DNA of 64,000 nt, taken from Obrimoposthia wandeli. Lineage: Eukaryota. The stretch lies in assembly GCA_977020255.1 (NCBI GenBank), contig CDROCS010000253.1, positions 2,914,001 to 2,978,000 on the forward strand. The letters are read 5' to 3'. Shown here piece after piece: positions 4,706-53,465 of the stretch. A model generated the notes under the pieces. It did not search any database. It was not told where the DNA came from and worked only from the letters and a program-made list of their open reading frames with translations. Within the stretch, counting starts at the first letter, position 1. Each line of letters opens with the position of its first letter. A program made the position numbers and the translations under genes.

Positions 4706-5019
4706 TATACCCGCTCCACTTGAAGATGCTCGTTTCAGGAAGTTTGAGCGATTCATAATCAAGACGCATTTTTTATTAAGGGTCATTCAGGAGAATGTGC
4801 CTCCTGCATTCTCTAATAAGCTACCTCCATGTAGGGTCCTTAAAAAGAAATCTAACGCAGAGTATGATTTGCTCAGTCTTCCCCAAGGGCTGGTTTAGAA
4901 ACCCTTTATGCTGAGTTATTGATTTTGACAATAGAATAACGATTCTCTTCAATCAAGGCCTTGCCTAAAGGTGTTTCTAATTCCAGCTGAATCATGCATC
5001 TTCAAGTGGAGCGGGTATA
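4706..5019. mobile_element. ERIC-like MITE, 314 bp
   Basis: Perfect 24-bp terminal inverted repeat TATACCCGCTCCACTTGAAGATGC / GCATCTTCAAGTGGAGCGGGTATA; TA at both ends; no coding capacity. Confidence 0.8.
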
Positions 5020-5060
5020 TTACTCGTTTTAGTTTTATGAGAAGCGATACTTATCCTATA

Positions 5061-6998
5061 TTAATGCTTAGGTAGTGGTTTTTGATAATAACGATTGAAG
5101 TCATTTACCGGTTCACTTTGTACGGGGTGCAGACGTATAAAGTCACTTGCAGAGAACGATTTTTTAATACCTTTCACAGTATTATTTCCGTTTTGTTGGT
5201 CTGGACTAATGGTTAGGTTATCCAGCCAATTATTTCCTTCAATCATCTTAATAGGGTTTGGTACTAGGCTCATTGCTGCTTGGCTGTCAAATTCAGGCAA
5301 TACACGGCTAGCACTAAAAAGCACTCTACTTCTTAATTCATCGTCGCCAATGCGACCGCGTTGCCCCCAAGTGACAATATAATTGGCAGCTGAGGTATTA
5401 TCTCCACTAGGCTGGTTGGTAATAGCGACATCACGTATGACAGCAAAACGGTTTTGCATCATTAACTCCTCAAATAACATAGCGTAATCTTCACGTTTAC
5501 TTGAGAAAGCATAAAAGTCTGAGGCGCCATCAGAGCTAAAGAAAATTTCTATATCTGTTGGTAAGTAATTTTTTTGTGTTTTATTTGCGCTCTCGCCAGC
5601 GAAACTAACTTGCGCTAAATCACGCATCTCTTGGCTTTTAAGAGGAAAGGAAATAGCTAATTCATCTGACTCAAACGTTGTACTGACGGCAGCATCGAGC
5701 ACTCGTTGATTACTTTTATGTACATACCATTCATTACTTGGGAAAAAATCATTGGCATGAGCAAGCTCATGATACATCAATGACGTTAAGCGATATAAAG
5801 CATCTGCTGGTGTTCGAGTAATACGTTCCGACTTACTATAACGTTGACTAGCATAAGCATTATCTTTTACGTACCGCCAAGGCATAACGAATTGTAAGTC
5901 GTTACCAAAACCAGCCCGAAAATCTGGTGCTTCATTAATAGTATCGCGCTCTTGCGGGCTTAACCAAAAATTTTCTGCATCTAAATATATCGCGCCTGTC
6001 GTAGCCCAGTAAAATGAAGGGCGCACATCATAAGAAATAACGATTGCTGTGGTTGCTCTAAGCAAGTTTTTTATATCGTTGTTGGTATCATTATGAGTCA
6101 AGAAGTCTTTAAAGCGATCGCCCATCCATCTATGTGACACGACAACGCGATCCATAATGCTTTCTATTGATGGCGTCATTGAGGAGCTTTTAACTTCTTC
6201 TGCAAGTAGAGGTGTTTGGGCTAAAGTACATGAACTGGTTAGGGTATTAGCGTAAACGCAAGTAACTAAATTTTTAGCATAAGGGCTATTACGATTATAA
6301 GTAAAAACCGAGGCTTTACGATCTGAAAAGTAAGCATTACTACCTATGGCAGCAGCCGGCTCTATTAGTACCGACACTTGATCATGATAGGTCGTATTAC
6401 TGTCAGAATCCGTAGCCGATGCCTTGAAGGTAAGAATAGTATCAACATCAACTTGTGGTGCATTAAAGAAAATAGCTAAGGCACCATCACTCTTATCAGT
6501 GGTTAAGGTGACATTAGGTCCCTTTATTTGTTGCCATACCAAAGTGTCGGTATTAATAGTCTCGTGAAGTTGGCTACGCAGTGATACTTTGTTACCAGCT
6601 AAAGTGGCATGAGACAAACGTGAGGTTAACTTATTAATATCCTCGTTAACGGTAATGTTTTTCTTTAGCGTTTGCTCAAAGCCATTATTGAGTATAAAAC
6701 TGACACTGAAACTGTAATCACCTGCAAGCGTTGGAGTAAAAGAAATAACTTTACTCGTTTTTGCTAAAATCAATACCGGCTCACCAGCCGTTTGCTGCCA
6801 GCTAATATTACTTACTTTGTCATTAGGATAGTGAAGAAGAAGATCAATGCCTTGGTTGATATTTTGTACTTCATCAATTTGCACTATGCTATCAAACGGA
6901 TAATTCGTTCCATTATTAGAGTTACTATCACACGCCGTTAATAACGTGACGAGTGATAATGACAGCAGTAAGTTGATGTTTACAATATTTAAGGACAT
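5061..6998 (-). CDS. Lipoprotein with two PKD/Ig-like domains and a putative HExxH metallopeptidase domain
   Basis: Lipobox LLTAC; WQQTAGEPV and WQQIKGPNV PKD-like motifs; YHELAHAND. Confidence 0.7.
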   Translation of the reverse strand: MSLNIVNINLLLSLSLVTLLTACDSNSNNGTNYPFDSIVQIDEVQNINQGIDLLLHYPNDKVSNISWQQTAGEPVLILAKTSKVISFTPTLAGDYSFSVSFILNNGFEQTLKKNITVNEDINKLTSRLSHATLAGNKVSLRSQLHETINTDTLVWQQIKGPNVTLTTDKSDGALAIFFNAPQVDVDTILTFKASATDSDSNTTYHDQVSVLIEPAAAIGSNAYFSDRKASVFTYNRNSPYAKNLVTCVYANTLTSSCTLAQTPLLAEEVKSSSMTPSIESIMDRVVVSHRWMGDRFKDFLTHNDTNNDIKNLLRATTAIVISYDVRPSFYWATTGAIYLDAENFWLSPQERDTINEAPDFRAGFGNDLQFVMPWRYVKDNAYASQRYSKSERITRTPADALYRLTSLMYHELAHANDFFPSNEWYVHKSNQRVLDAAVSTTFESDELAISFPLKSQEMRDLAQVSFAGESANKTQKNYLPTDIEIFFSSDGASDFYAFSSKREDYAMLFEELMMQNRFAVIRDVAITNQPSGDNTSAANYIVTWGQRGRIGDDELRSRVLFSASRVLPEFDSQAAMSLVPNPIKMIEGNNWLDNLTISPDQQNGNNTVKGIKKSFSASDFIRLHPVQSEPVNDFNRYYQKPLPKH

Positions 6999-7020
6999 TA
7001 ACTTCTTCCTTCCTAGTTTA

Positions 7021-7066
7021 TACTCAAGCCACTGAAGCTGCAGGTTTCAAGTGGCTTGGGTATAGC
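7021..7066. repeat. Minimal ERIC-like element (46 bp, ends only)
   Basis: TATACTCAAGCCACTGAAG-ctgcagg-TTTCAAGTGGCTTGGGTATA near-perfect inverted repeat with TATAC...GTATA ends. Confidence 0.7.
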
Positions 7067-7084
7067 GAGCCAAAACGGTTAGAG

Positions 7085-7492
7085 TTATTTACTCTCTGAA
7101 TCGATGTCTTTCTTTTTTCGGATGCTCAAGCCAAGTTCCTGACCACGAAACTTAGCATAATAAGTAGCACCAAAAAACATCGCGCTAGCAAAAATCAACT
7201 CTAACATTGCCCATATTCTGTCCGCGGGTAATACCCAAAGCGTGGTTAAACTATGTAAAAAATAGATTAAAACAATGAAGTTAGACCAAGCATAAGTGAA
7301 TGGATTTCCTTGCAACATACCTTTTAAAGGAAATAATAACGGCAAGGTAAACATTAGTAGTGTCGTTAAAGTACCTAAGCTTTCACTTGGGCTTAGTACT
7401 ATTAACCATAACGGCATAAATACTAATAAAGAAAAATAACCAGCTAAGGCTATTTTTTTGTAATTACTGGTAGAAAGTCTTTGTTTGTTCAT
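7085..7492 (-). CDS. DUF2069 family membrane protein
   Basis: PLLFPLKGMLQGNPFTYAWSNFIVLIYFLH motif; arsC-DUF2069-hda synteny. Confidence 0.88.
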   Translation of the reverse strand: MNKQRLSTSNYKKIALAGYFSLLVFMPLWLIVLSPSESLGTLTTLLMFTLPLLFPLKGMLQGNPFTYAWSNFIVLIYFLHSLTTLWVLPADRIWAMLELIFASAMFFGATYYAKFRGQELGLSIRKKKDIDSESK

Positions 7493-7514
7493 TGGGCTGC
7501 TTATTTAAAAAAGG

Positions 7515-7871
7515 TTACTGTTTAAAAAAAGTTAAAACATTTTCAGGGGGACGACCAATAATTGCTTTGTTACCATCAGTGACGATAGGACGTTCAATTA
7601 GTTTCGCCGTATTTGCCATGGCATTAATTAAGTCTTCTTCATTAGCCCCTTTTAAATTATTGTCAGTAAACTCAGCTTCTTTTACGCGCATCATTTCAAG
7701 CGCAGAACAATTAAGCTGTGCTAATAATTGCTTGATTTGAGCATGATCAAGTGGTGTTTTTAAGTACTCAACAATGGTCACATCTTGCTGTGATTTTTGT
7801 GCTTGTTCTTCAAGTAAAGCAAGTGTTTGGCGACTTTTAGAACACCTTGGATTGTGATAAATAGTAAACAT
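7515..7871 (-). CDS. arsC: Arsenate reductase (glutaredoxin)/YfgD family
   Basis: IYHNPRCSKSR, LIERPIV, AIIGRPPENV. Confidence 0.88.
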   Translation of the reverse strand: MFTIYHNPRCSKSRQTLALLEEQAQKSQQDVTIVEYLKTPLDHAQIKQLLAQLNCSALEMMRVKEAEFTDNNLKGANEEDLINAMANTAKLIERPIVTDGNKAIIGRPPENVLTFFKQ

Positions 7872-7929
7872 TGTTTTCCTTTGATAATTAATTGATGGTT
7901 AAACGATAATATAAATGCTAATAAATGGG

Positions 7930-9399
7930 TTACAAACGTTTTAAACGATTTTCTTGTTCTTGTAATTGTAATATTCGAGCCTTTACTCTTTTTTGCATTA
8001 AAGGCTGCTCGTCAAGAAAGGCATAACTCGTCTGCAATTCGTCAACGGCTTTTGGGTATGCGCCAAGTAAAGCGTAGACTTCAGCTTTACTCATGTGCAT
8101 TAAACCTGTTTTCTCTTGCGAGCGATACAGGTTGGTTAATATATCATAAGCGATAAAGTTACCGGGGTTGACTAATAAAAAGTCATGCAATATTTGTGCG
8201 GCAAGGTCATATTTTTTCACGGTAAGTAGTGCGTTAGCATAGTTTAAACTCACTACTTGATTGTTAGGCATGAATAAGGTTAATCGTTCAAGCATCTTAA
8301 TTGCTTCAGTTGCTTGGTTATTTGCTATGTAGACATCCGTTAAGGCATCAACATAAAATAAATTATTTTCATCGTGTTGCTTTAACATCTCTAATAATTG
8401 CAACGCTTCACTCGTTTGTTTGTTTTCAAAATATGATAGCGCTAAACCATATTGCGCAGCAGCTTTAAGGGAATAGCGTTTTTTCGCTAATTGTTGCTTA
8501 AAAAAGCTGATATTTGATCTAGCATCACCTTGATATCTCGCTTTTAATCTTGCTTTAGTGAGTTCAAAATCTAAGCTAGGTGGTCGTGGTCTTGCTGGAT
8601 AGTTTAAAGCACGTTGGCGAGCATCGGCAATACGAGATTCGGGTAATGGATGGGTAAGCAACATTGCTGGCGGCTTACTGGCATAGCGATATTTAGTCGA
8701 CATCTTACTAAAAAAGCTTGCCGCACCTTGGGGATCATAATTGCTACTTGCTAGTAAGGCAATACCTACTCTATCAGCTTCTTTTTCATTACCACGCGTG
8801 TAGTTAATACTGGCTTGCTGTGTTACGGCCATACTCGCACTAAGTGCGGCCATACCAACGGTGGGGTTAACTAAAGTAAGTAGCACACTAGAAAGCATAG
8901 CGGCCATGGTTAAGCCTTGTGTTTGACTTTGTGATTCAAGACGACGGGCTAAATGGCGCTGAGTAACATGAGAAATTTCATGAGCAATAACAGAAGCCAA
9001 TTCACTTTCAGTGTCAGCCGTTGTTATTAAACCACTATGGATACCTACATGACCGCCAAAAAAAGCAAAAGCGTTTAATTCACTATTATTGATAAGAAAA
9101 AATTCAAACGCGTAATTAACCCCTTGGGCATTTTTTACTAGGGAATTACCTAAGTGGTTAATATACTCAATTAATACTGGGTCTTGAATTAGTGGTTGCG
9201 AGGCGCGTAATTGGCGCATCATAGCTTGACCAATTTGCAGCTCTTTATCTATTGATAATACGCTGTAGCCTGAAATGCCTATGTCGGGTAGTTTATTCTT
9301 ATTGTTATGATTATCAATGGCACTAGCATTAAAGCTAGTCGCTGTAGCAATGCCTAATGTAAATAACAAAGCAGTAAGCATGGGTCTTAGGTTAAACAA
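7930..9399 (-). CDS. bepA: Beta-barrel assembly-enhancing M48 metalloprotease with TPRs
   Basis: NAFAFFGG, HEISH zinc motif, EKEADRVG, LTHPLPESRI. Confidence 0.93.
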   Translation of the reverse strand: MFNLRPMLTALLFTLGIATATSFNASAIDNHNNKNKLPDIGISGYSVLSIDKELQIGQAMMRQLRASQPLIQDPVLIEYINHLGNSLVKNAQGVNYAFEFFLINNSELNAFAFFGGHVGIHSGLITTADTESELASVIAHEISHVTQRHLARRLESQSQTQGLTMAAMLSSVLLTLVNPTVGMAALSASMAVTQQASINYTRGNEKEADRVGIALLASSNYDPQGAASFFSKMSTKYRYASKPPAMLLTHPLPESRIADARQRALNYPARPRPPSLDFELTKARLKARYQGDARSNISFFKQQLAKKRYSLKAAAQYGLALSYFENKQTSEALQLLEMLKQHDENNLFYVDALTDVYIANNQATEAIKMLERLTLFMPNNQVVSLNYANALLTVKKYDLAAQILHDFLLVNPGNFIAYDILTNLYRSQEKTGLMHMSKAEVYALLGAYPKAVDELQTSYAFLDEQPLMQKRVKARILQLQEQENRLKRL

Positions 9400-9455
9400 T
9401 ATTACATCCTAGAGTCATAATTGAAATATACGAAAGTGATAAAGAACACTTAGGC

Positions 9456-10058
9456 TTATAGGGTAAGGATATTACCATTTCTTTTAGCTATTTCTTGGTA
9501 AAACTCCCTTATATTATAACCTTTGACCACAATAATTTGAAAAGATTCGCTTAAAGTTGTGATTAACTCTTCAACTTTGTAATGCGCGTATTTTAACAAT
9601 GCCTTATCTGCTTCATCCCCACTTTGAAAGCAGTAAATAGCAAAAGCAACTAAGCTATTAAGTCGAAAGAGCATCTGCGTCTTCTCAGGTAACCAGTTAT
9701 TAAAAGGGCAGTTGCCTTTATCAATCATACTATGAGTAACTATTTCACCGTCAATAGCAGGGTAACAATGTAACTCATAGCCCATGTCATTAAATTCATG
9801 TCGTAAGCTAATTTGTGGTTTGTTTTTTACCTGGATACTACCATCTGATTTTTTGATTGCACCAAGCAAGGGTAAATTCCATGAATTTGGGTTTAAAACT
9901 TGTTTATATGCACTATCAAACCCATGAGTAAGAATGCCGTCTACCTCACCTAATGAAGAAGAAAATATATGATATATAGAGGATACTTCTCCCCAATTAA
10001 TTTTCTTTTTATACGCATTAATTTCTTTCAAATTAGCTTTCGGGCTTAATGAATGCAT
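9456..10058 (-). CDS. Hypothetical cytoplasmic protein (200 aa)
   Basis: Uninterrupted ORF fitting the gap upstream of bepA; no motif recognised. Confidence 0.75.
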   Translation of the reverse strand: MHSLSPKANLKEINAYKKKINWGEVSSIYHIFSSSLGEVDGILTHGFDSAYKQVLNPNSWNLPLLGAIKKSDGSIQVKNKPQISLRHEFNDMGYELHCYPAIDGEIVTHSMIDKGNCPFNNWLPEKTQMLFRLNSLVAFAIYCFQSGDEADKALLKYAHYKVEELITTLSESFQIIVVKGYNIREFYQEIAKRNGNILTL

Positions 10059-10097
10059 TTAATATTCCTGGCAATAAATTGATTCTCAGAAGACTTA

Positions 10098-10159
10098 ACC
10101 TTGTATAAAGTCATTTTAATTCCCCCTGAAATCCGACACTTTGAATGGTAACGGCTATA
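10098..10159. repeat. Truncated right end of the ERIC-like MITE family
   Basis: TTTTAATTCCCCCTGAAATCCGACACTTTGAATGGTAACGGCTATA closely matches the right end of the element at 21724-22102. Confidence 0.7.
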
Positions 10160-10246
10160 GAGGTACGTTATGATAACTTTAATTAGTACAATGGATTAAT
10201 TGTCGCAAATTAGTGAATTAAACTAAAGCGCTGTTTTAAGTTTTCT

Positions 10247-10477
10247 ATGATTTATAAATATGATGGCAGAGGAGAAAAATGTCCGGTGCCTTTGGTTAAA
10301 TTACGTTTATTACTAAAAAAAATGCAAGATGACGATCAATGTATTATCACCATTGATGATATTGGCTCTATTAATGATATTCCTAAATTGTTAGATAAGC
10401 AGGGCTATTTTTATCAAAAACAGATCAATGAGATGGGTATTGTCGAGATAAGTATTAATACAGGTAAGTCAGACTAA
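10247..10477 (+). CDS. TusA/SirA-like sulfurtransferase-family protein
   Basis: DGRGEKCPVPLVKL (CPxP motif), 76 aa. Confidence 0.85.
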   Translation: MIYKYDGRGEKCPVPLVKLRLLLKKMQDDDQCIITIDDIGSINDIPKLLDKQGYFYQKQINEMGIVEISINTGKSD

Positions 10478-10501
10478 GCAAAAATTAAAGAATGGGTAGT
10501 T

Positions 10502-11584
10502 ATGTTTAAGTTATTTAGTGATTGGTATACACGTAAATTTTCAGATCCTCATGCAGTCACGTTAGTTGTTATTTTAACCTGTATTGCCTTGTTTATTGCT
10601 TTATTTAGCAGCTTACTGATGCCAGTATTTGTTGCAGTAGCATTAGCTTTTTTGTTAGACCTACCGGTAAATAAACTAATGCAGAGCTCAATGTCGCGCT
10701 CTAGTGCAACCGTCGTAGTTGTTGTTACTTTTCTAGGATTTTCCTTATTGGCCGTCTTAGGTTTAATGCCTATTATTTGGAAACAAAGCAGTAATTTATT
10801 ACAAGAAGTTCCTAATATGATCAGTCAAGGACAAGGTTACTTATTGACCTTGCCAGAGAAATACCCTGATTTCGTTCATGTCTCGCAGATTGAAAGTTTT
10901 ATTATCATGGTTAATGATAAGTTGCTCGAATGGGGACAGGTGGCACTGAAAGCATCACTAAACTCAATTTCTGATATCGTTGCTTTAATGGTTTATTTGA
11001 TTCTTGTGCCATTAATGATTTTTTTCTTTTTAAAAGATAAAACGGAGCTAATGAACAGCATTACACGATTTTTACCTAAAGAACGCCGAATGGCTATTAA
11101 GGTGAGTCAGGAAATGAACCAACAAATTTTGAATTATATTCGTGGTAAAGTGATTGAAATTTTGATTGTGGGCTCATCTACGACGATTGCTTTTATGTTT
11201 CTTGATTTGCAATATGCCTTATTATTGGGGGTTTTAGTTGGTTTGTCGGTACTTGTTCCTTATGTAGGTGCAACTGTGGTAACGCTTCCTGTTATGTTAG
11301 TCGCTCTTTTTCAATTTGGATTAAGTAGTGAGTTTGGTTACGTTATGCTTGCTTACGGCATAATTCAAACGATTGATGGTAATGTTATTGTGCCTTTACT
11401 CTTTTCTGAAGCGGTTAATTTACATCCCGTGGTCATTATTATTGCAGTGATATTTTTTGGTGGTTTATGGGGCTTTTGGGGCGTTTTTTTTGCAATCCCC
11501 TTAGCAACATTAGTGAAGGCGGTGATTAATGCTTGGCCTTCAATACCTGAGCCTGAAAGTACCCGTGAAGCTCAGAAGTTGTAA
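10502..11584 (+). CDS. perM: AI-2E family transporter (PerM/YfgO-like)
   Basis: NYIRGKVIEILIVG, VPYVGA, DGNVIVPLLFSEAVNLHP, GGLWGFWG. Confidence 0.88.
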   Translation: MFKLFSDWYTRKFSDPHAVTLVVILTCIALFIALFSSLLMPVFVAVALAFLLDLPVNKLMQSSMSRSSATVVVVVTFLGFSLLAVLGLMPIIWKQSSNLLQEVPNMISQGQGYLLTLPEKYPDFVHVSQIESFIIMVNDKLLEWGQVALKASLNSISDIVALMVYLILVPLMIFFFLKDKTELMNSITRFLPKERRMAIKVSQEMNQQILNYIRGKVIEILIVGSSTTIAFMFLDLQYALLLGVLVGLSVLVPYVGATVVTLPVMLVALFQFGLSSEFGYVMLAYGIIQTIDGNVIVPLLFSEAVNLHPVVIIIAVIFFGGLWGFWGVFFAIPLATLVKAVINAWPSIPEPESTREAQKL

Positions 11585-11604
11585 CCTGTACTGATTTCTA
11601 CATT

Positions 11605-11647
11605 AAAAAGCCCTAAGCTAATATGAATTAGCTTAGGGCTTTTTTTT
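11605..11647. terminator. Bidirectional intrinsic terminator
   Basis: AAAAAGCCCTAAGCTAAT...ATTAGCTTAGGGCTTTTTT. Confidence 0.85.
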
Positions 11648-11658
11648 CATAACGTTAC

Positions 11659-12132
11659 TTATTTTAACTCGTTTAAAACGGCTAAAACCACATCATGATG
11701 TTCTTTAGTTTTAAACTTATTAAAAACATGGCTGATTTTTCCATCAAGACCAATTAAAAAGCTTAAGCGATGAATACCATCATATTCTTTACCCATAAAT
11801 TTTTTCAAACCCCAAACACCAAATTGGTCAGCAACCTGATGGTCAACATCAGATAACAATGAAAAGTTCAGTGCATCACGTTCGCAGAATTTAGTTAAAC
11901 GTTTTACTTCGTCAGGACTAATACCAAAAACAACCGTGTTTAATGCATTAAGCTCCGCTTTAATATCACGTAAACCTTGGGCTTGTACAGTACAACCCGG
12001 TGTCATAGCTTTAGGGTAAAAATAGACTAATACCTGTTGTTTACCAAGATAATCAGCTGATGATACTGACTCATCATTTTCATTGTTTAGAGTAAATAGT
12101 GGCGCGGTATCACCAATTTTTAGAGTATTCAT
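11659..12132 (-). CDS. bcp: Thioredoxin-dependent thiol peroxidase
   Basis: YFYPKAMTPGCTVQA, WGLKKFMGKEYDGIHR. Confidence 0.96.
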   Translation of the reverse strand: MNTLKIGDTAPLFTLNNENDESVSSADYLGKQQVLVYFYPKAMTPGCTVQAQGLRDIKAELNALNTVVFGISPDEVKRLTKFCERDALNFSLLSDVDHQVADQFGVWGLKKFMGKEYDGIHRLSFLIGLDGKISHVFNKFKTKEHHDVVLAVLNELK

Positions 12133-12172
12133 AATAAAGTCACTTCTATTTGTTTTAAAATTCTTTCGCTAA

Positions 12173-12700
12173 TTATAATAAATTAGCATTGGTCTTTTTG
12201 ATTAAACCGTGAACATCGGTTTGCTGACAGAGTTCTAGGAAATCATACTCTAGCTCATCAATACTAATTTTTTCGGTTAAAGCAAAAGATATGTTGGCGC
12301 TCATATAATTGGTTTTAGGGTCTATTTCCGACTTTAACGAAGAGATATCTATTTTACGAGTGGCAAAAAAGGCGGTCATTGCTTTTAAAATACCAGGTTG
12401 GTCTATGCCAGAATACTCCGCTTGATAATGTTTTACTAAGTCAAAAATTCTATGACCAGAGGTACGCTTCATCATAGTGATTAAATCTAAGCTATGAGCA
12501 AGTTTCGGGATCTTAACTTCAATTTTATTAATCGCCCTGGTATCACCAGCAAGCAACATAATGAAAGTAAATTCAGAGCCAAAAATGGCCATTCGGCTGT
12601 CTAATATATTACATCCGCATTCACTTGCTAATTTAGTTAATTCACTAACACAACCAGTTCGGTCCGATCCCATCGCGGTTAGTACTAAATATTGTGGCAT
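12173..12700 (-). CDS. gcvR: Glycine cleavage system transcriptional repressor (ACT domains)
   Basis: YLVLTAMGSDRTG, GCNILDSRMAIFG, DQPGI; gcvR-bcp synteny. Confidence 0.92.
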   Translation of the reverse strand: MPQYLVLTAMGSDRTGCVSELTKLASECGCNILDSRMAIFGSEFTFIMLLAGDTRAINKIEVKIPKLAHSLDLITMMKRTSGHRIFDLVKHYQAEYSGIDQPGILKAMTAFFATRKIDISSLKSEIDPKTNYMSANISFALTEKISIDELEYDFLELCQQTDVHGLIKKTNANLL

Positions 12701-12937
12701 TCATTAAGCCTAAGTTGTCAAGAAAGGCGCATTGTAACTGATCATGATAAAAGTTGGAATCATCTTACATTTTTGTGGTCATATAACTTGTGTTTGTAAA
12801 ATCAGGCAAGTACCATGGGGCGCAATATTTGCTCTGTCTTATATCGTCTTATATCGATTTTATTTTAGTGTTTTTTAGTATTTTTTAGTGAGCTTAGCGG
12901 GTTTTGAATATCAATAACCTAAGCCACAGGAGTTTTA

Positions 12938-14107: not shown

Positions 14108-14154
14108 TCTTGGCTTTCACAAAGTAATTATCAAGTAGTTACTTCGTTACTATA

Positions 14155-14197
14155 CAGACATAAAAAAACTCCATTAGTTGGAGTTTTTTTATGTCTG
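14155..14197. terminator. Bidirectional intrinsic terminator
   Basis: CAGACATAAAAAAACTCCA...TGGAGTTTTTTTATGTCTG. Confidence 0.85.
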
Positions 14198-14232
14198 AAA
14201 TCTGACTTCAGTTTTTAAGAATAAGCATTACG

Positions 14233-14421: not shown

Positions 14422-14480
14422 TGGAGTGCCTCTTGGTAAGTTTGTGAAGTTAATTCGCTAAAATTAGTATTCTAGGATAA

Positions 14481-15194: not shown

Positions 15195-15207
15195 TGCTCA
15201 AGAAACC

Positions 15208-20265: not shown

Positions 20266-20292
20266 AAATTAAATCCTATTTATATATTTTGT

Positions 20293-21723: not shown

Positions 21724-22102
21724 TATACCCGTTACCAACCAAAGTGCAGGATTTCAGTGGGAATTAAAATCACTTTAGGCAAGGTAAATAATTTAAGCAT
21801 AGTCATTCTATGGTTTGATTATTTAACGCAGTATAAAGTGATTTTAAACCCATCAAAGAAGCGCTTGAGCAACATCACTTCATCGTTACTGTGACTTATA
21901 ATGGAACAACCATTATTTCATCACAGCGCCTTGAATTGAAATTGCTCAAGCACTCTGAAACCTGCATCTTGAATGATAACGGGTATATGTTACCCAAGCG
22001 CTTCTTCGATGGACTTACAATGACTATGTTTAAATTATTTTTGCTTGCCTACAGACTTTTAATTCCCACTGAAATCCAACACTTTGAATGCTAGCGGGTA
22101 TA
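21724..22102. mobile_element. Composite/nested ERIC-like MITE, 379 bp
   Basis: About 85-bp imperfect terminal IRs starting TATACCCG; an internal second element end (GCATCTTGAATGATAACGGGTATA, about 21965-21988); inner IR CCATCAAAGAAGCGCTTG / CAAGCGCTTCTTCGATGG. Confidence 0.8.
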
Positions 22103-22628: not shown

Positions 22629-22770
22629 TAATACCAATCCCATTAAATTTATGATCTTGTTGTACACAGGGAAAATAAATCAGGGCAAGGCGCTTGATTG
22701 AGTAATAGCTGGCTATTGGGATTGAGAGCAACGCTGAGATTGAGTATTTTAACCCGTACAAGCATAACCT
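22629..22770. mobile_element. Partial MITE (TAATACCAAT-type left end, right end not found)
   Basis: Starts TAATACCAATCCCATTAA right after the yfbV stop; inner arms pair; carries a variant of the shared CAAGGC...CAACG hairpin. Confidence 0.6.
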
Positions 22771-22837
22771 AATAGCTTAAGCTAGTAGTTTCAACTATCT
22801 AAAAGTCGATTTCATCATCATCATCACGATTTAAAAT

Positions 22838-23683
22838 CTAATTAGTCTTTTGGTATAAACGTAAAACAAAGTCAGCTTGGCAGCTAAATTGTTTTTGTTG
22901 TTTCAATTGAGTAAGTAATTCATCACTGGCTTTAAAGGCAAAAGGCGTCATTGCTAATAAATTCAGCACATCGTCACTATCAGAGAAATCCATCAGGTAA
23001 TTCAAGCGTTGTTCTTCAACTAATGTTAATTGCTCAATAACTTGTTTTGCTGTGTCATGTTTATTTGCTTGGCGATATATTAGCGATTTAAGCTCAAACA
23101 AATGATTATCGGCAGGGGTAACCGTTAACAAATAACCTTGATCTTGCAAAATTCGGGTGAACTCATTTTCTAAAATGGGTGCATAAACACTATATAACCA
23201 GCCAAATTTTTCGTTAGCAAATGGTAAGTCAGAGAGGGTTGCTACGCTAAAAAAGCAGTCTTGATAACGTTTTGCTGCAATCTTTATTGTTTCTTTAGCA
23301 ATATCTACACCGTACACGCTGTTGTGCTCAGTTTTATGTTGATGTGTATAAAAACCTTCACCGCAGCCAGCATCAAAAACAGCTGTGTTTTTATCGCCAT
23401 ACTTTTGATATAACGCGAGCATGCTGTCGAGTAAAGGCTGGTAATAGCCTTTATCTAAAAATGCACGTCTAGCTTGTACCATTGCTTTGTTATCGCCAGG
23501 CTCTTTTGAGTGCTTAAACTGCACGGGTAATAAATTAACATAGCCTTGCTTTGCTTGATCAAAACTATGATTATTTTCACAACGGTAGCTCTTTTCATCA
23601 AGTAATAAAGCTTGCTGGCAAAGAGGACAACGATATTGGGCTGATTTTTTACTAGCGACGTTATTAGAGATATCAGTATGCAT
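22838..23683 (-). CDS. rlmA: 23S rRNA m1G745 methyltransferase (RlmA family)
   Basis: Zn finger CPLC...CENNHSFD..KQGYVNLL, RRAFL..GYY, DAGCGEGFY, MTPFAF. Confidence 0.85.
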   Translation of the reverse strand: MHTDISNNVASKKSAQYRCPLCQQALLLDEKSYRCENNHSFDQAKQGYVNLLPVQFKHSKEPGDNKAMVQARRAFLDKGYYQPLLDSMLALYQKYGDKNTAVFDAGCGEGFYTHQHKTEHNSVYGVDIAKETIKIAAKRYQDCFFSVATLSDLPFANEKFGWLYSVYAPILENEFTRILQDQGYLLTVTPADNHLFELKSLIYRQANKHDTAKQVIEQLTLVEEQRLNYLMDFSDSDDVLNLLAMTPFAFKASDELLTQLKQQKQFSCQADFVLRLYQKTN

Positions 23684-25588: not shown

Positions 25589-25743
25589 AAGCTCATTTTT
25601 ATTACATTTTTTGATAATACCAATTGGACTAATTTATTGATCAACTTAGAACTTCAGTAGCGAGCTTAAAATAAGCAAAAAAAATTAAATATAGTTATTC
25701 TATACTTCATTTTTTTGTGATGTTATCAGTTTGCTAATGTGTT

Positions 25744-25881
25744 CCCAAAGGGCGAGTTTAAAAGGCTTATATGCGGCGTTATTGATTTTGACAAGGGAAT
25801 AACCATTCTCTTCAATCAATGCCTTGCCTCTAAGCCTTTTAACTCTCGCTAAGTGGTCAATTAATTAATTCACTTGATATA
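25744..25881. mobile_element. Partial MITE with nested hairpin
   Basis: GCGAGTTTAAAAGGCTTA / TAAGCCTTTTAACTCTCGC arms around the shared 50-nt module; ends ...CACTTGATATA. Confidence 0.65.
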
Positions 25882-25888
25882 AGGTAAG

Positions 25889-40596: not shown

Positions 40597-40866
40597 TTAG
40601 GGTCTGTTGATCTTTCGCGGTTAAATTTTGTTCGAGATAAAAGCGTTTTAATCGCGGCGAGTAGTGTGTAGCCTAGTCACTCTAAGCAAATACTACTCAA
40701 CAAAGAGTAAAGCGCTTTTAGCCGAATCCTTCGGACAGCGTTTGTTGGTCATTTTTACGGCGTTATCGCCTTTTTATGTGGAACAACCACATGACAAAGG
40801 CTCTGCCTTGTATAAATACCCAACAAATGGCTGCAAAAACAACCTCAAAAGTTCAACAGACCCTAA
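40597..40866. mobile_element. MITE, 270 bp, TTAGGGTCTGTTGA-type ends
   Basis: TTAGGGTCTGTTGATCTTT / AAAGTTCAACAGACCCTAA terminal IR (1 mismatch); two internal hairpin modules. Confidence 0.8.
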
Positions 40867-44684: not shown

Positions 44685-44706
44685 GATCGTATAGTAATAA
44701 ACAAGT

Positions 44707-44761
44707 AAAGGGCTGTTGAGACTCTTTGAACCTAACCGTTCTTTTAGCCTCAACAGCCTTT
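44707..44761. terminator. Inverted repeat/terminator between fadJ and the M16 gene
   Basis: AAAGGGCTGTTGAG-N28-CTCAACAGCCTTT followed by a T-run. Confidence 0.6.
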
Positions 44762-44778
44762 TTTATTGTCTTTAATAT

Positions 44779-47586: not shown

Positions 47587-47873
47587 CACTAAGGCTCCTA
47601 AGAACACTTTAAACGACAAAAAACGACAAAGCGTATGTTGAGAATATGAATAGTTTTTAATTTAACAGGGAGATAAAGAAAATCCTTAATTACTTAAAAG
47701 AATAAAAAAATCCTATTTATTCTTAACTGTTGTTATTAATACGCGTGTAATTCTATTACTATAGCCGCAAAAATAACTTAGACTCAATACTTTAGCCGAT
47801 AAAATGTGTAAAAAAGCTAAAAATTGAAATATTCCGCTATGGTAATCTATATACATAGTCGTCGAGAGAATTA

Positions 47874-48404
47874 ATGCAACTTTATATAATGCGCCATGGC
47901 GAAGCTCAAAATTTTGTTGAGCAGGGCAGTCGTGATGACAGCCAAAGAGCGCTAACCGCAGAAGGTAAAACTGAAGCGAAAATGATGGGGAATTGGTTGA
48001 AAAAAATGAAGATAAATCCTACGCAAGTCTTTGTTAGCCCTTATATTAGAGCCCAACAAACCTGTGCGATAGCAACTTCGTTGATGCAGACAACTATTAC
48101 CACGTTAGATTTTATTACGCCTTCAGGCGACGCTAAACAGGTACATGACTTTATTGATGGTTGGTGTAGTGAACAATTAGCAACGTTAACTCTGCAAAAT
48201 TCAGGTAAGCAAGTATCAGATCAACAAGAAATAAGCTTGTTGATAATCTCCCACATGCCTTTAGTTAGTTACTTAGTAGCGCAATTAACACAATCGGGTA
48301 ATGCCCCTATTTTTGCTACGGCAGGTATTGCTCAGATTGATTATGATATTGAGAAAATGCAAGGGTCTTTGCAACGTCTCGTTTCACCGATAGAGCTGTG
48401 TTAA
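47874..48404 (+). CDS. sixA: Phosphohistidine phosphatase SixA
   Basis: MRHGEA, SPYIRAQQT, SHMPLVSYL. Confidence 0.93.
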   Translation: MQLYIMRHGEAQNFVEQGSRDDSQRALTAEGKTEAKMMGNWLKKMKINPTQVFVSPYIRAQQTCAIATSLMQTTITTLDFITPSGDAKQVHDFIDGWCSEQLATLTLQNSGKQVSDQQEISLLIISHMPLVSYLVAQLTQSGNAPIFATAGIAQIDYDIEKMQGSLQRLVSPIELC

Positions 48405-48414
48405 TACTTAGCTC

Positions 48415-49131
48415 TTAATTCCGGTTATATTTATCTTTTAATTCGATTAACGCCAAGATAGCACCATTGCCGCCCCACTCTAAGGGTGCTTGATGAAATG
48501 CCATGACATCGGGATGTTGTACCAACCAATGCGGAACTTTATTTTTTAAAATGTGTGAGCCTATGCCATGAACAACGCATATACACTGGGCGTGTTCTTT
48601 TTGGCAGGCAAAGAGCAAGGCAGCCAACTCTTTCTTCGCTTGATGTTGGTCTAAACCATGTAAATCAAGAATGAGATCGGGTCGATAATAGCCGCGGCGA
48701 AGGTTTTTGACTTCAAAGCTGTCAACACCCTCTCGAACATATTTCATCGGACCTTGTTTATTTAAGTTAGGTTCAAATTCATCAGAAAAATGAAATTGCG
48801 CGATGGCCTTATTTGCCTTGTTATACTCTTGGTCATTTTTTAGGGAAGTGTTAGACTTGTGGCCACTTTTAATTAAGCGAACTGTGTCGACGACCAACGG
48901 CTTAACTTGACCGACAGCATCGGCAAAAAGTTGCTTTTCATCAGGCAATACTTCTTTAATTGACTCATTAGTTTTTTGTAATGATTCATCAGTCTTTTTT
49001 TGCTGACTCTTGCTTTGCGCGCTTGCTGCAATATTCGCGCGAACTTTGGCTTTAATTGCAGAAAGTTCGGATTTTAGGGCTCTGTTTTTCATCAATGCAG
49101 TGTAAAACATTTTAGTGCCAATACATAACAA
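48415..49131 (-). CDS. smrB: Smr-domain endonuclease SmrB (YfcN); true start may be further downstream
   Basis: [28 protein letters not shown]; divergent from prmB. Confidence 0.9.
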
Positions 49132-49244
49132 TTAATACTGTTAAGTCACTAACGTAACAGACAAACAGAGCTCCACAGTTAAGCTGTACAATTAAGCTTC
49201 AAGTTTGTGCAGCAAAATATAAGAATACTTTTGAGGAAGAGAAT

Positions 49245-50189
49245 GTGAGCAATACCAACATTGAAAACATAACAGCGCAATTACACACGATTGCTGATTT
49301 TTGTCGTTATGGGGCCAGTATATTTAATCAAGCAGAACTTTTTTATGGTCATGGCAATGACAATGCGTTAAATGAGGCACTTACCTTGGTGATGTTCGCC
49401 TTATCCTTACCCGAGGAAATGAGCGAAGACGTAATGACTTGTCGCTTAGTTGACTACGAGAAGCAACATATTCTAGCACTTTTTGAGCAACGCATTGAAA
49501 CACAGCAACCTGTTGCCTATATCACCAACCTTGCTTATTTTGCCCAGTTACCTTTTTATGTGGATGAACGTGTTTTAGTCCCTCGCTCACCTATTGGTGA
49601 ATTGATTGAAAAACACTTTGCTCCTTATTTTAGTGAGCAAAATCCACCGCAACGAATTTTAGACTTGTGTACCGGTAGTGGTTGTATTGCCATTGCCTGC
49701 GCGAGTTATTTTCCTGATGCTGAAGTTGATGCGGTTGATTTATCGCTCGATGCGTTAAATGTTGCGGAAATGAATATTGAAAACCATGGTTTAAGTGAAC
49801 AAGTTATTCCAATTCAATCTGATGTTTTTTCTGGGGTTGTATCGCAAAAATATGATTTAATTGTCACTAACCCGCCTTACGTTGATCAAGAAGACATGGC
49901 TAGCTTACCGGCGGAATTTACCCATGAACCCGAAATGGGCTTAGGCTGTGGTGAAGACGGTTTAGATATTGTTAGAATTATCTTGGCAGAGAGTGCTTTG
50001 CACCTCAATGATGGTGGCGTACTCATTTGTGAAGTGGGTAACTCACAATATCATGTTGAAGCTCTCTACCCAGAAGTAGACTTTACTTGGTTAACCTTTG
50101 AGCGCGGTGGTCATGGTGTCTTTATGCTAAATAAAGCGCAGTTAGAGCAGCATGCAGAAACATTTTTAGCTGCACTTAAAACAGCATAA
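49245..50189 (+). CDS. prmB: Ribosomal protein L3 N5-glutamine methyltransferase
   Basis: YGHGNDNA, VLVPRSPI, LDLCTGSGCIA, NPPYVD. Confidence 0.96.
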   Translation: MSNTNIENITAQLHTIADFCRYGASIFNQAELFYGHGNDNALNEALTLVMFALSLPEEMSEDVMTCRLVDYEKQHILALFEQRIETQQPVAYITNLAYFAQLPFYVDERVLVPRSPIGELIEKHFAPYFSEQNPPQRILDLCTGSGCIAIACASYFPDAEVDAVDLSLDALNVAEMNIENHGLSEQVIPIQSDVFSGVVSQKYDLIVTNPPYVDQEDMASLPAEFTHEPEMGLGCGEDGLDIVRIILAESALHLNDGGVLICEVGNSQYHVEALYPEVDFTWLTFERGGHGVFMLNKAQLEQHAETFLAALKTA

Positions 50190-50324
50190 AGGTAAATTAG
50201 CAGCTATCTAAGTCGACAGTTCAAAAAATGGACAGTGACAAATAGATAGTACAAAAAATGGCGAATACTAAAAATAAAGCGTATTCGTCGCTTTAAAAAT
50301 TAAATTAATAGGCGGTAATGTTCA

Positions 50325-51446
50325 ATGTCAGGAAATACCTTCGGAAAGTTATTTACAGTCACCTCGTTTGGTGAAAGTCATGGTTTAGGATTAGGCGCTA
50401 TTATCGATGGTTGCCCACCCGGACTTGAATTATCTGAAGCTGACTTACAAATCGATTTAGACAGACGTCGCCCAGGCACCTCTCGATATACTACGGCTCG
50501 CAGAGAAGCGGATGAAGTCAAAATTCTTTCAGGCGTATTCGAAGGTAAAACCACAGGCACGCCTATTGGTTTAATGATTGAAAATACCGACCAACGTTCA
50601 AAAGACTATGGCAACATTGCCGACAGTTTTCGTCCAGGCCATGCAGATTATACTTACTGGCAAAAATACGGATTACGTGATTACCGTGGTGGTGGGCGTT
50701 CTTCTGCGCGTGAAACGGCGATGCGTGTTGCTGCAGGCGCAGTGGCAAAAAAATATTTAGCCGAAAAATTTGGCATGACTATCCAAGCCTGTGTCACTCA
50801 AATTGGTGATATTGTTGCCAGTGGACCAAATGGCACACCGTTTGATGTTAATACTGTTGATTGGGCAAGCGTGGAAGACAATCCATTCTTCTTTCCAGAT
50901 GAGACTAAAATTGAACAACTTGGTGAGTACCTTCGTGGCATCATCAAAGAAAAAGACTCTATTGGCGCAAAAGTGACCGTTGTAGCCACTAATGTACCTG
51001 TGGGCTTAGGTGAGCCTGTTTTTGACCGTTTAGATGCTGATATTGCTCATGGTTTAATGAGTATTAATGCCGTGAAAGGTGTTGAAGTCGGTGATGGTTT
51101 TGCCGTGGTAAATCAAAAAGGCTCCGAGCATAGAGATGAACTTACCCCTGAAGGGTTTTCAACAAACCATTCGGGTGGTGTTTTAGGTGGTATTTCATCA
51201 GGTCAGCAAATTATTGCACATTTAGCCCTTAAACCTACTTCAAGTATTGGTGTAAGTGGTAAAACTGTAGATTTAACTGGTGAAGCGACTGATATTATTA
51301 CTAAAGGTCGTCATGATCCTTGTGTTGGTATTCGTGCGGTACCTATTGCAGAAGCAATGTTAGCATTGACTTTAATGGATCATTTTCTACGTCACCGTGG
51401 ACAAAATGCAGATGTTCAATGTAATACACCAGACATTGAAGCATAG
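50325..51446 (+). CDS. aroC: Chorismate synthase
   Basis: [29 protein letters not shown]. Confidence 0.99.
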
Positions 51447-51462
51447 ATAATAACAGTCTTTA

Positions 51463-51495
51463 GTTTAGTGAGTAGATCTCAGTTTACTCACTAAA
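51463..51495 (+). other. Hairpin between aroC and the MFS gene
   Basis: GTTTAGTGAGTA-N9-TACTCACTAAAC. Confidence 0.55.
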
Positions 51496-51539
51496 CCCCT
51501 GCATTAGTTCCTTTTCTTTTCATCGTAAGGCTCATACGC

Positions 51540-52715
51540 TTGATTCCTTTCAACATGATGTTTGTTCGATTATCTTCGAGTTACTTCTTTTATTTTGCGC
51601 TACTGGGCTTAATTTCCCCCTATTTGTCTATTTTCCTTGATGGACAGGGTTTTACCTCTCGTCAAGTGGGTGAAATTCTTGCCATTATGACCGCGACAAA
51701 AATTATTGCGCCAAGTTTATGGGCAACACTTGCGGATAAAACAGCAAAACCTTTATTCATTATTCGACTCGGTGCTTTGTTAGCGTTGTTTAGCTTTAGC
51801 TTGCTTTATTGGTTTAGCCATTATTGGCCAATCACCTTTTCTTTGGCACTTTTTACCTTATTTTGGACCGCCATTTTACCGCAATTAGAAGTGCACACGT
51901 TAAACTCGATTAAGCAAAGTAGTAAAATTTACGCGCGTGTGCGCTTATGGGGAAGTTTGGGATTTATCGTCTTAGCTGTATTGGCAGGCGAGGCAATGAG
52001 CAGCCTAGGCTATCAAGTATTTACCAGCTTAGGTGTTATTATTTTAGCCTGTCTTTTTGGCAGTACCTTGCTTTTAACCTCGAAAAAATCGGTAAAGCTA
52101 GGCAAAGGAAAGGCAAAAGTTCTAGCCCCCATTTTTAATAAACTCATCGAAGGACGTTTTGTTCGCTTCTTTATCGCAGGTTTATTATTGCAAATTAGCT
52201 TTGCCCCCTATTACGGTTTTTTTGCACTGTTTTTACGTGATTTTCACTACTCAGGCTTGGCCGTTGGCTTATTTATTTCATTGGGCGTTGTTGCCGAAAT
52301 TGTTGCTTTTATCTATATGGGCTCATTATTTAAACGCTTCTCTTTAAACTCATTATTAGTGTTTAGTTTGGCCATTACTGCTTTACGTTGGTTTTTGATG
52401 CCTGTTGTTGCCGACTCAGTATTATGGCTTGGGATAATTCAATTAGGCCACGCCGCCAGTTTTGCTATCTATCATAGCGCCAGCATGAAGTTTATTTCTT
52501 CGCACTTTACTAAGAGCCAGCAAAGTCGAGGGCAAGGTATCTATTTAGGTGGTGTGTATGGTATTGGTGGTGCTATAGGTGCTTATTTTACTGGCATACT
52601 ATGGCTAGACGGGCAGGGCGCGAGTAACGCTTTTATCATGGCAGGCACCAGTGCTTTACTTGGCGCGATAATTATGATTTTCAGTAAAAAACAAATGAGT
52701 CATTCGTTTGGCTAA
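51540..52715 (+). CDS. MFS transporter (HcaT/MFS_1-like)
   Basis: About 12 TM segments, YARVRLWGSLGF, GVVAEIVAF; usual neighbour of aroC. Confidence 0.88.
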   Translation: MIPFNMMFVRLSSSYFFYFALLGLISPYLSIFLDGQGFTSRQVGEILAIMTATKIIAPSLWATLADKTAKPLFIIRLGALLALFSFSLLYWFSHYWPITFSLALFTLFWTAILPQLEVHTLNSIKQSSKIYARVRLWGSLGFIVLAVLAGEAMSSLGYQVFTSLGVIILACLFGSTLLLTSKKSVKLGKGKAKVLAPIFNKLIEGRFVRFFIAGLLLQISFAPYYGFFALFLRDFHYSGLAVGLFISLGVVAEIVAFIYMGSLFKRFSLNSLLVFSLAITALRWFLMPVVADSVLWLGIIQLGHAASFAIYHSASMKFISSHFTKSQQSRGQGIYLGGVYGIGGAIGAYFTGILWLDGQGASNAFIMAGTSALLGAIIMIFSKKQMSHSFG

Positions 52716-52774
52716 GCCATTTTGCTGTATAGTATTTAACAGTGATACATTAACTTAAGAATGAAGGTCATCAT

Positions 52775-53176
52775 ATGAAATATCTCTTCGCTAAAAAAAT
52801 TGCCACAACAATCGTTCTTGCTTTGACATTCGCCACCACATGGCAAGTTTCAGCTAAAGATATTAGTCAAAGCCAACTGCAACAGCTTATGACAAATGAC
52901 AAGCAGGTTGTAGTACTCGATGTTAGAACCGTGGCAGAGTTCGAAGACGGCCATATACCTAACGCAGTCAATATCCCACATAAAGAGCTTGAGGCTCGAT
53001 TAGCCGAACTGTCGGGCGTGAAGAACACCCAAGTCGTTATCTATTGTCGTTCAGGTAGAAGAGCAGAAGTTGCCAGACAAGTATTGGTGAAAAGTGGTTT
53101 TAATCAGTTAGACCATTTATCAGGTGACTTTAATGAATGGAGCAGTAACAATTTACCGACTCAAACAGGTAAGTAA
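52775..53176 (+). CDS. Exported single-domain rhodanese (PspE-like)
   Basis: Signal peptide, LDVRT..EF..GHIPNA, YCRSGRRA. Confidence 0.9.
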   Translation: MKYLFAKKIATTIVLALTFATTWQVSAKDISQSQLQQLMTNDKQVVVLDVRTVAEFEDGHIPNAVNIPHKELEARLAELSGVKNTQVVIYCRSGRRAEVARQVLVKSGFNQLDHLSGDFNEWSSNNLPTQTGK

Positions 53177-53205
53177 ATACTGAACTATTAATCGTTGAAA
53201 CGAAT

Positions 53206-53251
53206 AAAACCACTTTATTTATTAACTGTTTTTAATAAATAAAGTGGTTTT
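53206..53251. terminator. Bidirectional terminator
   Basis: AAAACCACTTTATTTATTA...TAATAAATAAAGTGGTTTT. Confidence 0.75.
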
Positions 53252-53300
53252 TAATTTTAATTGAATACTAAAGCTAAGTTACATAGCTATATAACTTAGT

Positions 53301-53465
53301 TATACCAGTTTCATTAATTAAGTGATCTATTTTATACGTAGGAAAAAACATCAAATACAAGGCATTTATTTTAATAACTAGTTGTTCTAATTATTAAATA
53401 AATAACGACGTAGTTGGTGATTTTAACAAGTAGAAATGATCACATAGTTAGTGAGATTGGTATTA
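53301..53465. mobile_element. MITE, 165 bp, TA(A)TACCA-type ends
   Basis: TATACCAGTTTCATTAATTAAGTGATC / GATCACATAGTTAGTGAGATTGGTATTA imperfect terminal IR; central 50-nt module. Confidence 0.72.

Follow-up and report, generated by a model that had tools for sequence, protein, structure and literature searches.

A structured hairpin unit as the probable core of a superfamily of TA-flanked miniature elements with an ERIC-related branch

Hairpin modules and their host elements in the window

The DNA analysed here is a 64,000 nt stretch (the window) of Obrimoposthia wandeli contig CDROCS010000253.1, assembly GCA_977020255.1, positions 2,914,001 to 2,978,000, with a G+C content of 38%. It contains six elements, here called A to F (Table 1), that carry copies of a 50 nt hairpin module and are miniature inverted-repeat transposable elements (MITEs): they are 165–314 nt long and non-coding, have terminal inverted repeats (TIRs) on every complete element and are represented by hundreds of copies across genomes. 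An earlier note on this sequence had listed seven copies of the hairpin, and each was found to read as described. Six are canonical, and a search with the pattern GTTA-N13-17-GAAYRAC-N15-21-CCTTG returned these six and no others, against 0.00 expected from 100 dinucleotide shuffles of the window. The fixed position of the loop G was borne out, with a 5' arm of 15 nt and a constant loop G offset in all six canonical copies. The seventh, at 22686–22733, is a true loop variant (AATAGCCAGCTATT). All of the module copies are intergenic, lying between open reading frames (ORFs) of the window.

The three types of host-element end that had been distinguished previously were all located in the window. 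TATACCCG ends bound elements A and B, TAATACCA-type ends bound elements C, D and F, and TAGGGTCTGTTGA ends bound element E. The end strings of the branches are TAGGGYCTGTTGA, TATACCCG and TAATACCAATT, the first of which may resemble IS5-family ends. Every element end is flanked by TA, and the empty sites of relatives are too diverged for a clean duplication to be read. In contigs from RNA libraries, the boundaries of element B are marked exactly by the divergence of other copies (loose ends at 21724 and 21986/7), and elements C and D are absent from the contigs of relatives, which have joints at 22632->22844 and 25587->25879, respectively.

When the extended unit described below was turned into a covariance model, 11 units were identified in the six window elements, including inverted partner arms in elements A, D and E that were absent from the earlier note. 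The fold of an element is either a single long hairpin with the module at its tip or a Y shape made of two of these arms.

The extended unit and the geometry of the elements

The 50 nt module is the apical half of an extended hairpin unit of approximately 114 nt, and conservation extends to the sequence on either side of the module. In order, the unit comprises the 5' strand of helix P1, CTG-CGTTR, the 5' strand of helix P2, the loop GARYRAC, the 3' strand of P2 (P2'), GCCTTG-CC and the 3' strand of P1. P1 is approximately 15–17 bp, and the internal loop 5'-CTGCGTTR / GCCTTG(CC)-3', which supplies the two sides of what we call the bracket, is conserved. P2 has a basal stem of approximately 9 bp, a small asymmetric bulge (2/3 nt) and a 5 bp apical stem that carries the loop G-ARYRA-C. 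Elements of 166 bp contain one unit and those of approximately 268 bp contain two inverted units, which are joined at a small CCC-NNN-GGG hairpin, so that the reverse complement of a two-arm element has the same layout.

When public genomes were scanned with the pattern CGTTA-N15-GAAYRAC-N16-18-CCTTG, using one genome per species, at least 120 loci were returned, a sample that is biased towards the pattern. Among the 120 matches listed, 116 are structured copies and all of these are in Gamma- or Betaproteobacteria; the four matches that lack the hairpin are the only ones outside these classes. Hosts of the structured copies among the matches listed include Colwellia and relatives, Pseudoalteromonas, Shewanella, Psychromonas, Vibrio/Enterovibrio, Halomonas, Thiodiazotropha, Sedimenticola, Wenzhouxiangella, Pseudomonas/Stutzerimonas, Acinetobacter, Deefgea and Sulfuricellaceae, among others. 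Unannotated copies were also found on chromids of Vibrio, Pseudoalteromonas and Catenovulum, and copies of element E in Vibrio chromids are 83% identical to it.

The earlier note had considered a motif spread by several MITE families, and the geometry of the elements does not support this. The module lies approximately 55 nt from the terminus whatever the end type, and the end motif comes at +43 to +49 after CCTTG for each of the four end types (..CAACAGRCCCTA, ..CGGGTATA, ..TTGGTATAA and ..GGGTTAATA). Where a second arm is present, it is inverted and 56–61 nt upstream, and complete elements are 263–270 bp (two-arm) or 166 bp (one-arm) from Acinetobacter through Thiodiazotropha. As the overall geometry and the flanks of the module are shared, common descent with diverging ends is favoured over transfer between unrelated MITEs. 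The elements look like one superfamily in which the ends have diverged and the core has been kept. We conclude with high confidence that the unit is the conserved core of a single superfamily of TA-flanked TIR MITEs in Gamma- and Betaproteobacteria, in which the TATACCCG branch is a relative of ERIC.

Table 1. Elements, hairpin units and fragments located in the window, and units that carry the nested micro-module (CM, covariance model)
Feature	Position	Strand	Description	Evidence
Element A	4706..5019		Two-arm, TATACCCG/CGGGTATA ends, 314 nt (~265 + 49 nt nested insert)	End motifs, Y-shaped fold
Unit with module 4914–4963	4882..4996	+	P1-bracket-P2-loop	CM 69.6 bits, pattern match
Element A partner unit	4728..4889	-	Loop split by ~49 nt two-hairpin GGA micro-module	CM 42.2 bits over 162 nt
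Right-end fragment	10095..10159	+	ACCTTG, P1 3' strand, right end ..ACGGCTATA	
Element B	21724..21987		Two-arm, 264 nt, TATACCCG ends	End motifs, fold
Unit with module 21780–21828	21748..21860	-		CM 87.6 bits
Unit with module 21884–21933	21852..21965	+		CM 86.2 bits
Partial element B2	21988..22102	+	Half element with internal deletion; module 3' half and right end kept	
Element C	22630..22858		229 nt, TAATACCA-type ends, one unit, loop-variant subfamily	
Unit with module 22686–22733	22654..22765	-	Variant loop AATAGCCAGCTATT	CM 17.2 bits
Element D	25615..25882		Two-arm, 268 nt, TAATACCA-type, TAATACCAATTGG end	
Unit with module 25777–25826	25745..25858	+	Commonest subfamily, IHF-like AATCAATGCCTTG	CM 101.2 bits
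Element D degenerate partner unit	25640..25751	-	Loop GAATAAC intact, bracket eroded	CM 29.4 bits
Element E	40598..40865		Two-arm, 268 nt, TAGGGTCTGTTGA ends	
Unit with module 40761–40810	40729..40843	+		CM 89.4 bits
Element E partner unit	40621..40734	-	TGTTG ... GAGTGAC ... CCGCG variant	CM 57.3 bits
Element F	53301..53465		One-arm, 165 nt, TAATACCA-type, TATACCAG/TTGGTATTA ends	
Unit with module 53358–53407	53326..53439	-		CM 69.6 bits
Units carrying the GGA micro-module	Window 4728..4889 (-); L001 5717..5879; L018 7596..7750; L014 5719..5889; L079 5281..5442			

Covariation and constancy of spacing

The arms had been described as almost completely different in sequence yet still able to pair, and a check for covariation was suggested. 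Fifty-five units that are mutually <75% identical were aligned with MAFFT, which gave an almost ungapped alignment in whose fitting no structure was used. Pairing was then scored at 31 positions of base pairing in the helices P1, P2 basal and P2 apical, with the 3' partners slid by 1–3 columns, or 500 shuffles, as controls. Standard pairs fill 75.3% of cells, compared with 33–39% in the slid controls and 43.9% in the shuffles, and the covariation score is 0.71, compared with 0.12–0.19 in the slid controls. Both sides have changed in 30 of the 31 pairs. None of the 500 shuffles reached the observed pairing or covariation values; because the sequences are related, the slid controls are the fairer comparison and the shuffle results are not probabilities. 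Covariation is thus strong on an alignment that was made without reference to structure, and the earlier description of the arms stands.

RNAalifold independently predicted the same helices. It added a G-C pair that closes the loop, leaving a pentaloop AAYRA, and C-G, G-C and U.G contacts within the bracket that are invariant and so beyond the reach of covariation. With the loop fixed, the hairpin formed by a unit's own arms has a mean energy of -4.9 kcal/mol, compared with -1.5 kcal/mol for swapped arms, though energy alone is a poor test because many of the AT-rich stems are individually weak.

The covariance model identified 215 units in the public loci and the window, 90 of them outside the search pattern. 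Of these 90 off-pattern units, 73 are 112–115 nt long, a constancy that is not imposed by the model, and the 5' arm is exactly 15 nt in 78; long outliers contain discrete inserts. The 5' side of the bracket is YGTTR (CGTTG in 31, CGTTA in 17 and TGTTG in 14), and the 3' side is CCTWG-like (CCTTG in 46, CCTAG in 12, CCTCG in five and CCGCG in four). The loop is GARYRAC (GAATAAC in 21, GAACAAC in seven, GAGTGAC in six and GAGTAAC in five). Free variation of spacing, which had been put forward as an observation that would count against selection, was not seen among these units. As structure and spacing have outlasted the turnover of arm sequence, the arms are not merely diverged copies of one sequence. 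The interior of these elements is more faithfully kept than their ends, which suggests that the fold has a job.

Two simpler accounts of parts of the unit were tried and set aside. An IHF site does not explain CCTTG, because a perfect WATCAANNNNTTR is present in only 26 of 210 units, all in one subfamily. Loop-loop kissing between the arms of two-arm elements was not supported (Y/R letters agree at 11/21 positions versus 8.1 expected, p=0.09).

Subfamilies and the search for a partner protein

The loop variant at 22686–22733(-) is not a one-off product of decay. It belongs to a conserved subfamily (..CCCAATAGCCAGCTATTACTCAATC..) that is present in several Colwellia genomes (loci L012, L021, L046, L099 and L108), in which GCCNGC replaces GARYRAC at the tip (GCCAGC in the count of 90 off-pattern units). 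A right-arm module, GTCGTCGTTCATTTGGAATAACCAAAYTTCTCTCCTC, is near-identical across distant genera and is found without a complementary basal stem (copies of Halomonas, Thiodiazotropha and Pseudomonas at L033, L042, L043, L059, L071, L078 and L117); either it pairs elsewhere or it persists for another reason.

Together with the flanking base, TAATACCA-type ends (..TTGGTATAA) resemble an outward-facing extended -10 box, TGGTATAAT (53457–53465 and 22850–22858 in the window; L004, L039 and others), and TAATACCA-type insertions might therefore give promoters to neighbouring genes. In Legionella pneumophila, a primer used for deletion of lpg2920-21 (PMC12457610 primer list) ends in TTTAGGGTCTGTTGAC, which is the TAGGGTCTGTTGA-branch end, so that a toxin-antitoxin locus of Legionella may have a copy of that branch next to it. 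A PrrB/RsmZ small RNA gene (136 bits; L011 7805–7935) is situated approximately 5.5 kb from the Pseudomonas copy and is probably unrelated to it.

A HUH or RAYT enzyme, or a linked transposase, had been suggested as a partner of the module, and none was found. Clustering of the ORFs in the 120 listed loci of 8 kb revealed no recurrent transposase near the copies, long pairs of ends enclose ordinary genes, and searches of plasmids with all three element types for an autonomous partner returned only unannotated or truncated copies. The module was also weighed as a site of recombination for one of the known systems that read structure, namely an integron attC site or a REP/REPIN sequence used by a RAYT (HUH) enzyme. 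The module begins with GTTA and, as in attC, structure is retained while sequence varies. However, the copies are scattered on both strands inside TIR elements rather than forming a co-oriented array behind cassettes, and the conserved letters are in the middle of the hairpin and at its tip, whereas the R boxes of attC are at the base. No integrase recurs beside the copies, and attC is largely ruled out on these grounds. REP/REPIN is likewise largely ruled out by the lack of a GTAG/CGTC head and of a 20–40 nt GC-rich palindrome, the unit being an AT-rich hairpin of approximately 100 nt; in the neighbourhoods of the copies there is also no recurrent RAYT or other HUH gene. An origin in either system is extremely unlikely.

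Nested insertions and fragments

Five different units contain, always at one position and facing one way, a two-hairpin 'GGA' micro-module of approximately 48–49 nt (CTACATGGATGTAG + GAGAATGCAGGAGCATATTCTC; Table 1). The site is the 5' edge of the loop, where the final base of the stem adjoins the loop G (..AAGG^GAAYRAC), and the micro-module looks like a site- and orientation-specific insertion into the hairpin loop. Its presence is the reason that element A, the right arm of which resembles elements D and B, is 314 nt rather than approximately 265 nt. A further hairpin, CCTACATGGAYGTAGG, was found directly 3' of CCTTG in several Pseudoalteromonas and Thalassotalea copies (L074, L087, L094, L095 and L111). 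As the same hairpin is also within the published Yersinia YPAL/RU-2 sequence (PMC2759123 Table 1b), the sequences hint that it may move between repeat families.

The half element B2 directly adjoins element B. Together with the lone right-end fragment at 10095–10159, it is a relic of decay or of recombination between copies.

The strand that appears to fold

Mismatches in the paired columns of the 55-unit alignment are unevenly distributed between the strands. Read on the GTTA..CCTTG strand, there are 133 A.C and 44 G.T combinations, and 147 pyrimidine-pyrimidine and 43 G.A/A.G mismatches. A.C exceeds G.T in 46 of the 55 sequences and the opposite is true of one. The excess of A.C is also present in well-paired columns (94 versus 26) and among single-change events within families (50 versus 28, p=0.017). 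Because of this excess, wobble pairs are available to the complement, 5'-CAAGGC..GTYRTTC..YAACG-3', at positions where the GTTA..CCTTG strand has mismatches. This constitutes moderate evidence, drawn from sequence comparison, that one specific strand, the complement of GTTA..CCTTG, has been selected to fold while single-stranded. The earlier note had proposed a recognition site in single-stranded DNA or RNA. The mismatch asymmetry supports a single-stranded fold, but the strand that appears to have been selected to fold is the complement of the one that had been written. Where an element has two arms, the strand favoured in each is the one that, read 5' to 3', leads inward from the end closer to that arm.

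An alternative is that the fold has no function, the palindromes being maintained by template switching at quasi-palindromes or by conversion between arms and the motifs simply being inherited from a common ancestor. The rarity of G.T intermediates and the dominance of double changes are what templated correction predicts; the mismatch asymmetry is partly family-specific and inherited, and many of the stems are weak and AT-rich. However, templated correction should erase asymmetric unpaired features, and the bracket, the 2/3 nt bulge and the 7 nt loop have persisted at fixed positions across bacterial orders while the stems have changed. Arm lengths have stayed fixed, and inheritance alone leaves unexplained why the motifs have outlasted both the stems and the ends. 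We consider a purely mutational origin improbable.

A possible role at the RNA level

Our preferred reading adds to the identity of the unit as the core of a superfamily a mechanism that operates on RNA, and we assign the two together a probability of approximately 0.4. The unit would act when single-stranded, through the folding strand 5'-CAAGGC..GUYRUUC..YAACG-3'. The variable stems would provide shape only, and the three conserved unpaired motifs, which are the 5' and 3' sides of the bracket and the apical loop, would be held at fixed distances as a surface for a conserved protein. Elements would be transcribed by read-through from neighbouring genes, and the hairpin could then determine the processing or stability of the RNA. 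The precedent is ERIC in Yersinia, which has been shown experimentally to be co-transcribed and to form RNA hairpins with an orientation-dependent RNase E effect (PMC2229807, PMC2267715). Under the two-arm design, such an effect on the RNA would be independent of the orientation of insertion. The elements are present, and heavily covered, in contigs from marine RNA libraries.

The observations that bear on the choice between RNA and DNA fall short of being decisive, and several weigh against this reading. The RNA-library contigs carry no information on strand or ends, their depth is summed over many copies, and DNA carry-over is possible. The orientation of one-arm units is unbiased with respect to upstream genes (26 versus 35) and in tandem gene contexts (13 versus 12), and no conserved inward promoter was seen in the end consensus sequences. 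In some subfamilies (Halomonas, Thiodiazotropha and Pseudomonas right arms) the basal P2 stem is not paired. Both the search pattern and the model are biased towards the motifs, whose conservation is therefore over-estimated. In the event-based count, the purine-purine asymmetry of the total counts is reversed rather than upheld, and part of the mismatch asymmetry may for that reason be inherited and not repeatedly selected. Finally, the constant distance to the terminus and the better-conserved interior fit a role in propagation of the element at least as well.

Such a role is the basis of a different explanation, in which the hairpin is a cis-acting signal for transposition at the DNA level. 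At a set distance from each end, the hairpin would be extruded in single-stranded DNA or as a cruciform, and it would be read by its shape and conserved unpaired motifs, the reader being a transposase or a host factor, as at integron attC sites or the single-strand origins of rolling-circle plasmids. This would account for a module-terminus distance and total size that are constant across end types despite fully substituted stems, and for an interior that is better conserved than the ends, which in transposon families is the normal mark of a need in propagation. Which strand is favoured is a property of the element itself and does not depend on the direction of host transcription or replication, with one-arm units also showing no orientation bias relative to local GC skew. 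On that strand G.A and G.T mismatches are about equally frequent, which fits mismatch stabilities in DNA better than those in RNA, and the insertion of a second tiny element at the loop edge, at a single site and in a single orientation, recalls elements that target single-stranded DNA. On the other hand, the neighbourhoods of the copies and the plasmids searched yielded no transposase and no other linked protein, and one-arm elements are abundant though their favoured strand faces one end only. The DDE transposases known to duplicate TA act on double-stranded ends and do not require a hairpin inside the element, and no experimental precedent for a signal of this kind is known in ERIC, YPAL or Correia elements. 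We regard it as less likely than the RNA reading, which it follows closely.

The units could also be small-RNA genes in their own right, each equipped with a promoter and a terminator, that the MITE has dispersed. Their strongly conserved structure and the high summed depth over the elements in the RNA-library contigs would be expected of such genes, but that depth is summed over many copies and the contigs give no ends. The consensus includes neither a conserved promoter nor a U-tract terminator. A search of Rfam 15 with the window and the Pseudomonas, Halomonas and Thiodiazotropha loci gave no match at the gathering score and only chance-level matches at E<=10, so no Rfam family was matched at any threshold. 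An independent gene is highly improbable, and we retain action within read-through transcripts as the preferred mechanism.

Significance

ERIC-type repeats are used worldwide as a tool for strain typing, and yet their movement and conservation remain puzzles. In the family described here, an interior fold has been kept by compensatory change while stems and ends were replaced, the reverse of the usual pattern in MITEs. Hundreds of natural 'mutants' delimit the constraints on it, which include the bracket YGTTR/CCTWG, the loop GARYRAC, the arm lengths and the strand. The family is new to Rfam and to the literature searched, which yielded no paper on MITEs in Colwellia, Shewanella or Pseudoalteromonas and no printed version of these sequences.

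A bolder proposal, which we hold doubtful, is that the success of these MITEs would rest not on their TIRs but on a structure- and strand-specific cis element, with a protein that reads the folded strand, through its shape and three unpaired motifs held at constant spacing, and ends that are interchangeable. If this is true, it would supply a testable recognition element for ERIC-type repeats, the mobilisation of which has been unexplained since 1990, and could indicate a route of transposition through single-stranded DNA.

Comparison with ERIC and other known systems

Rolling-circle origins of the ssoA type form a long imperfect hairpin with one active strand, variable stems and motifs in an internal unpaired region and the terminal loop. 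The likeness to the units described here is one of working principle; no sequence similarity is claimed, and there is no evidence for single-stranded circles of these MITEs. Integron attC sites are also alike in principle, being recognised by a folded single-strand shape with few fixed unpaired or boxed letters, free stems and strand specificity. They differ in the position of the conserved letters, their organisation in arrays and their link to an integrase, whereas the units in the window are embedded in TIR elements.

YPAL/RU-2 of Yersinia (167–168 bp) and Correia/NEMIS of Neisseria are, like these elements, small, structured intergenic repeats; they are co-transcribed and form long RNA hairpins that are processed by nucleases, RNase III in the case of NEMIS (PMC2229807, PMC2759123). 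YPAL/RU-2 is similar in size to the 166 bp one-arm form. However, neither YPAL nor Correia shares the ends or the bracket, and YPAL has in common only the CCTACATGGATGTA hairpin, which is part of the nested micro-module and not of the module itself.

The closest known relative is ERIC, also called IRU, a 127 bp MITE of Enterobacterales and Vibrio. It too is intergenic, forms a long hairpin from an imperfect palindrome and has no known transposase; it has TA-flanked TATACCCG..GGGTATA ends, a subterminal ..TGCA.CTTGAAG.. and the bracket (PMC2759123, PMC2229807). The resemblance noticed previously is real. The published consensus reads TATACCCG..CAG CTGCGTTG [hairpin] GCCTTG CTGCAAC..GGGTATA (PMC2759123 Table 1a), and the TATACCCG branch shares with it similar ends and the same CTGCGTTG...GCCTTG bracket. 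The TATACCCG branch, an Escherichia coli copy of ERIC (L121, 110–236) and the consensus have in common their ends, TGCA.CTTGAAG and CAG-CTGCGTTG ... GCCTTG-CTGCA. In the TATACCCG branch only, the end consensus is identical to the E. coli ERIC ends at 20–22 of 36 positions (shuffle p~5e-4). The terminal repeats of ERIC (TATACCCG..., ...CTTGAAGT...GGGTATA) are matched by this branch, whereas the other two end types differ and are linked to ERIC by shared architecture only.

ERIC nevertheless lacks the P1 helix, and has 26 nt from CCTTG to the end rather than approximately 55. At 61 nt and with TTAT at the tip, its hairpin differs from the 40 nt form with GARYRAC, and it has one arm only in 127 bp, while the family in the window is 166 or approximately 268 bp. 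When element B was used to query E. coli genomes with blastn no match was returned, and the unit covariance model did not recognise the E. coli ERIC copy (5.4 bits, E=0.37, not significant). Given the missing P1, the longer hairpin, the other tip and these two search results, the window elements are, judged by sequence, best filed as variants within an ERIC-related superfamily and not as ERIC proper, and ERIC itself takes its place in a much larger superfamily of marine and other Gamma- and Betaproteobacteria.

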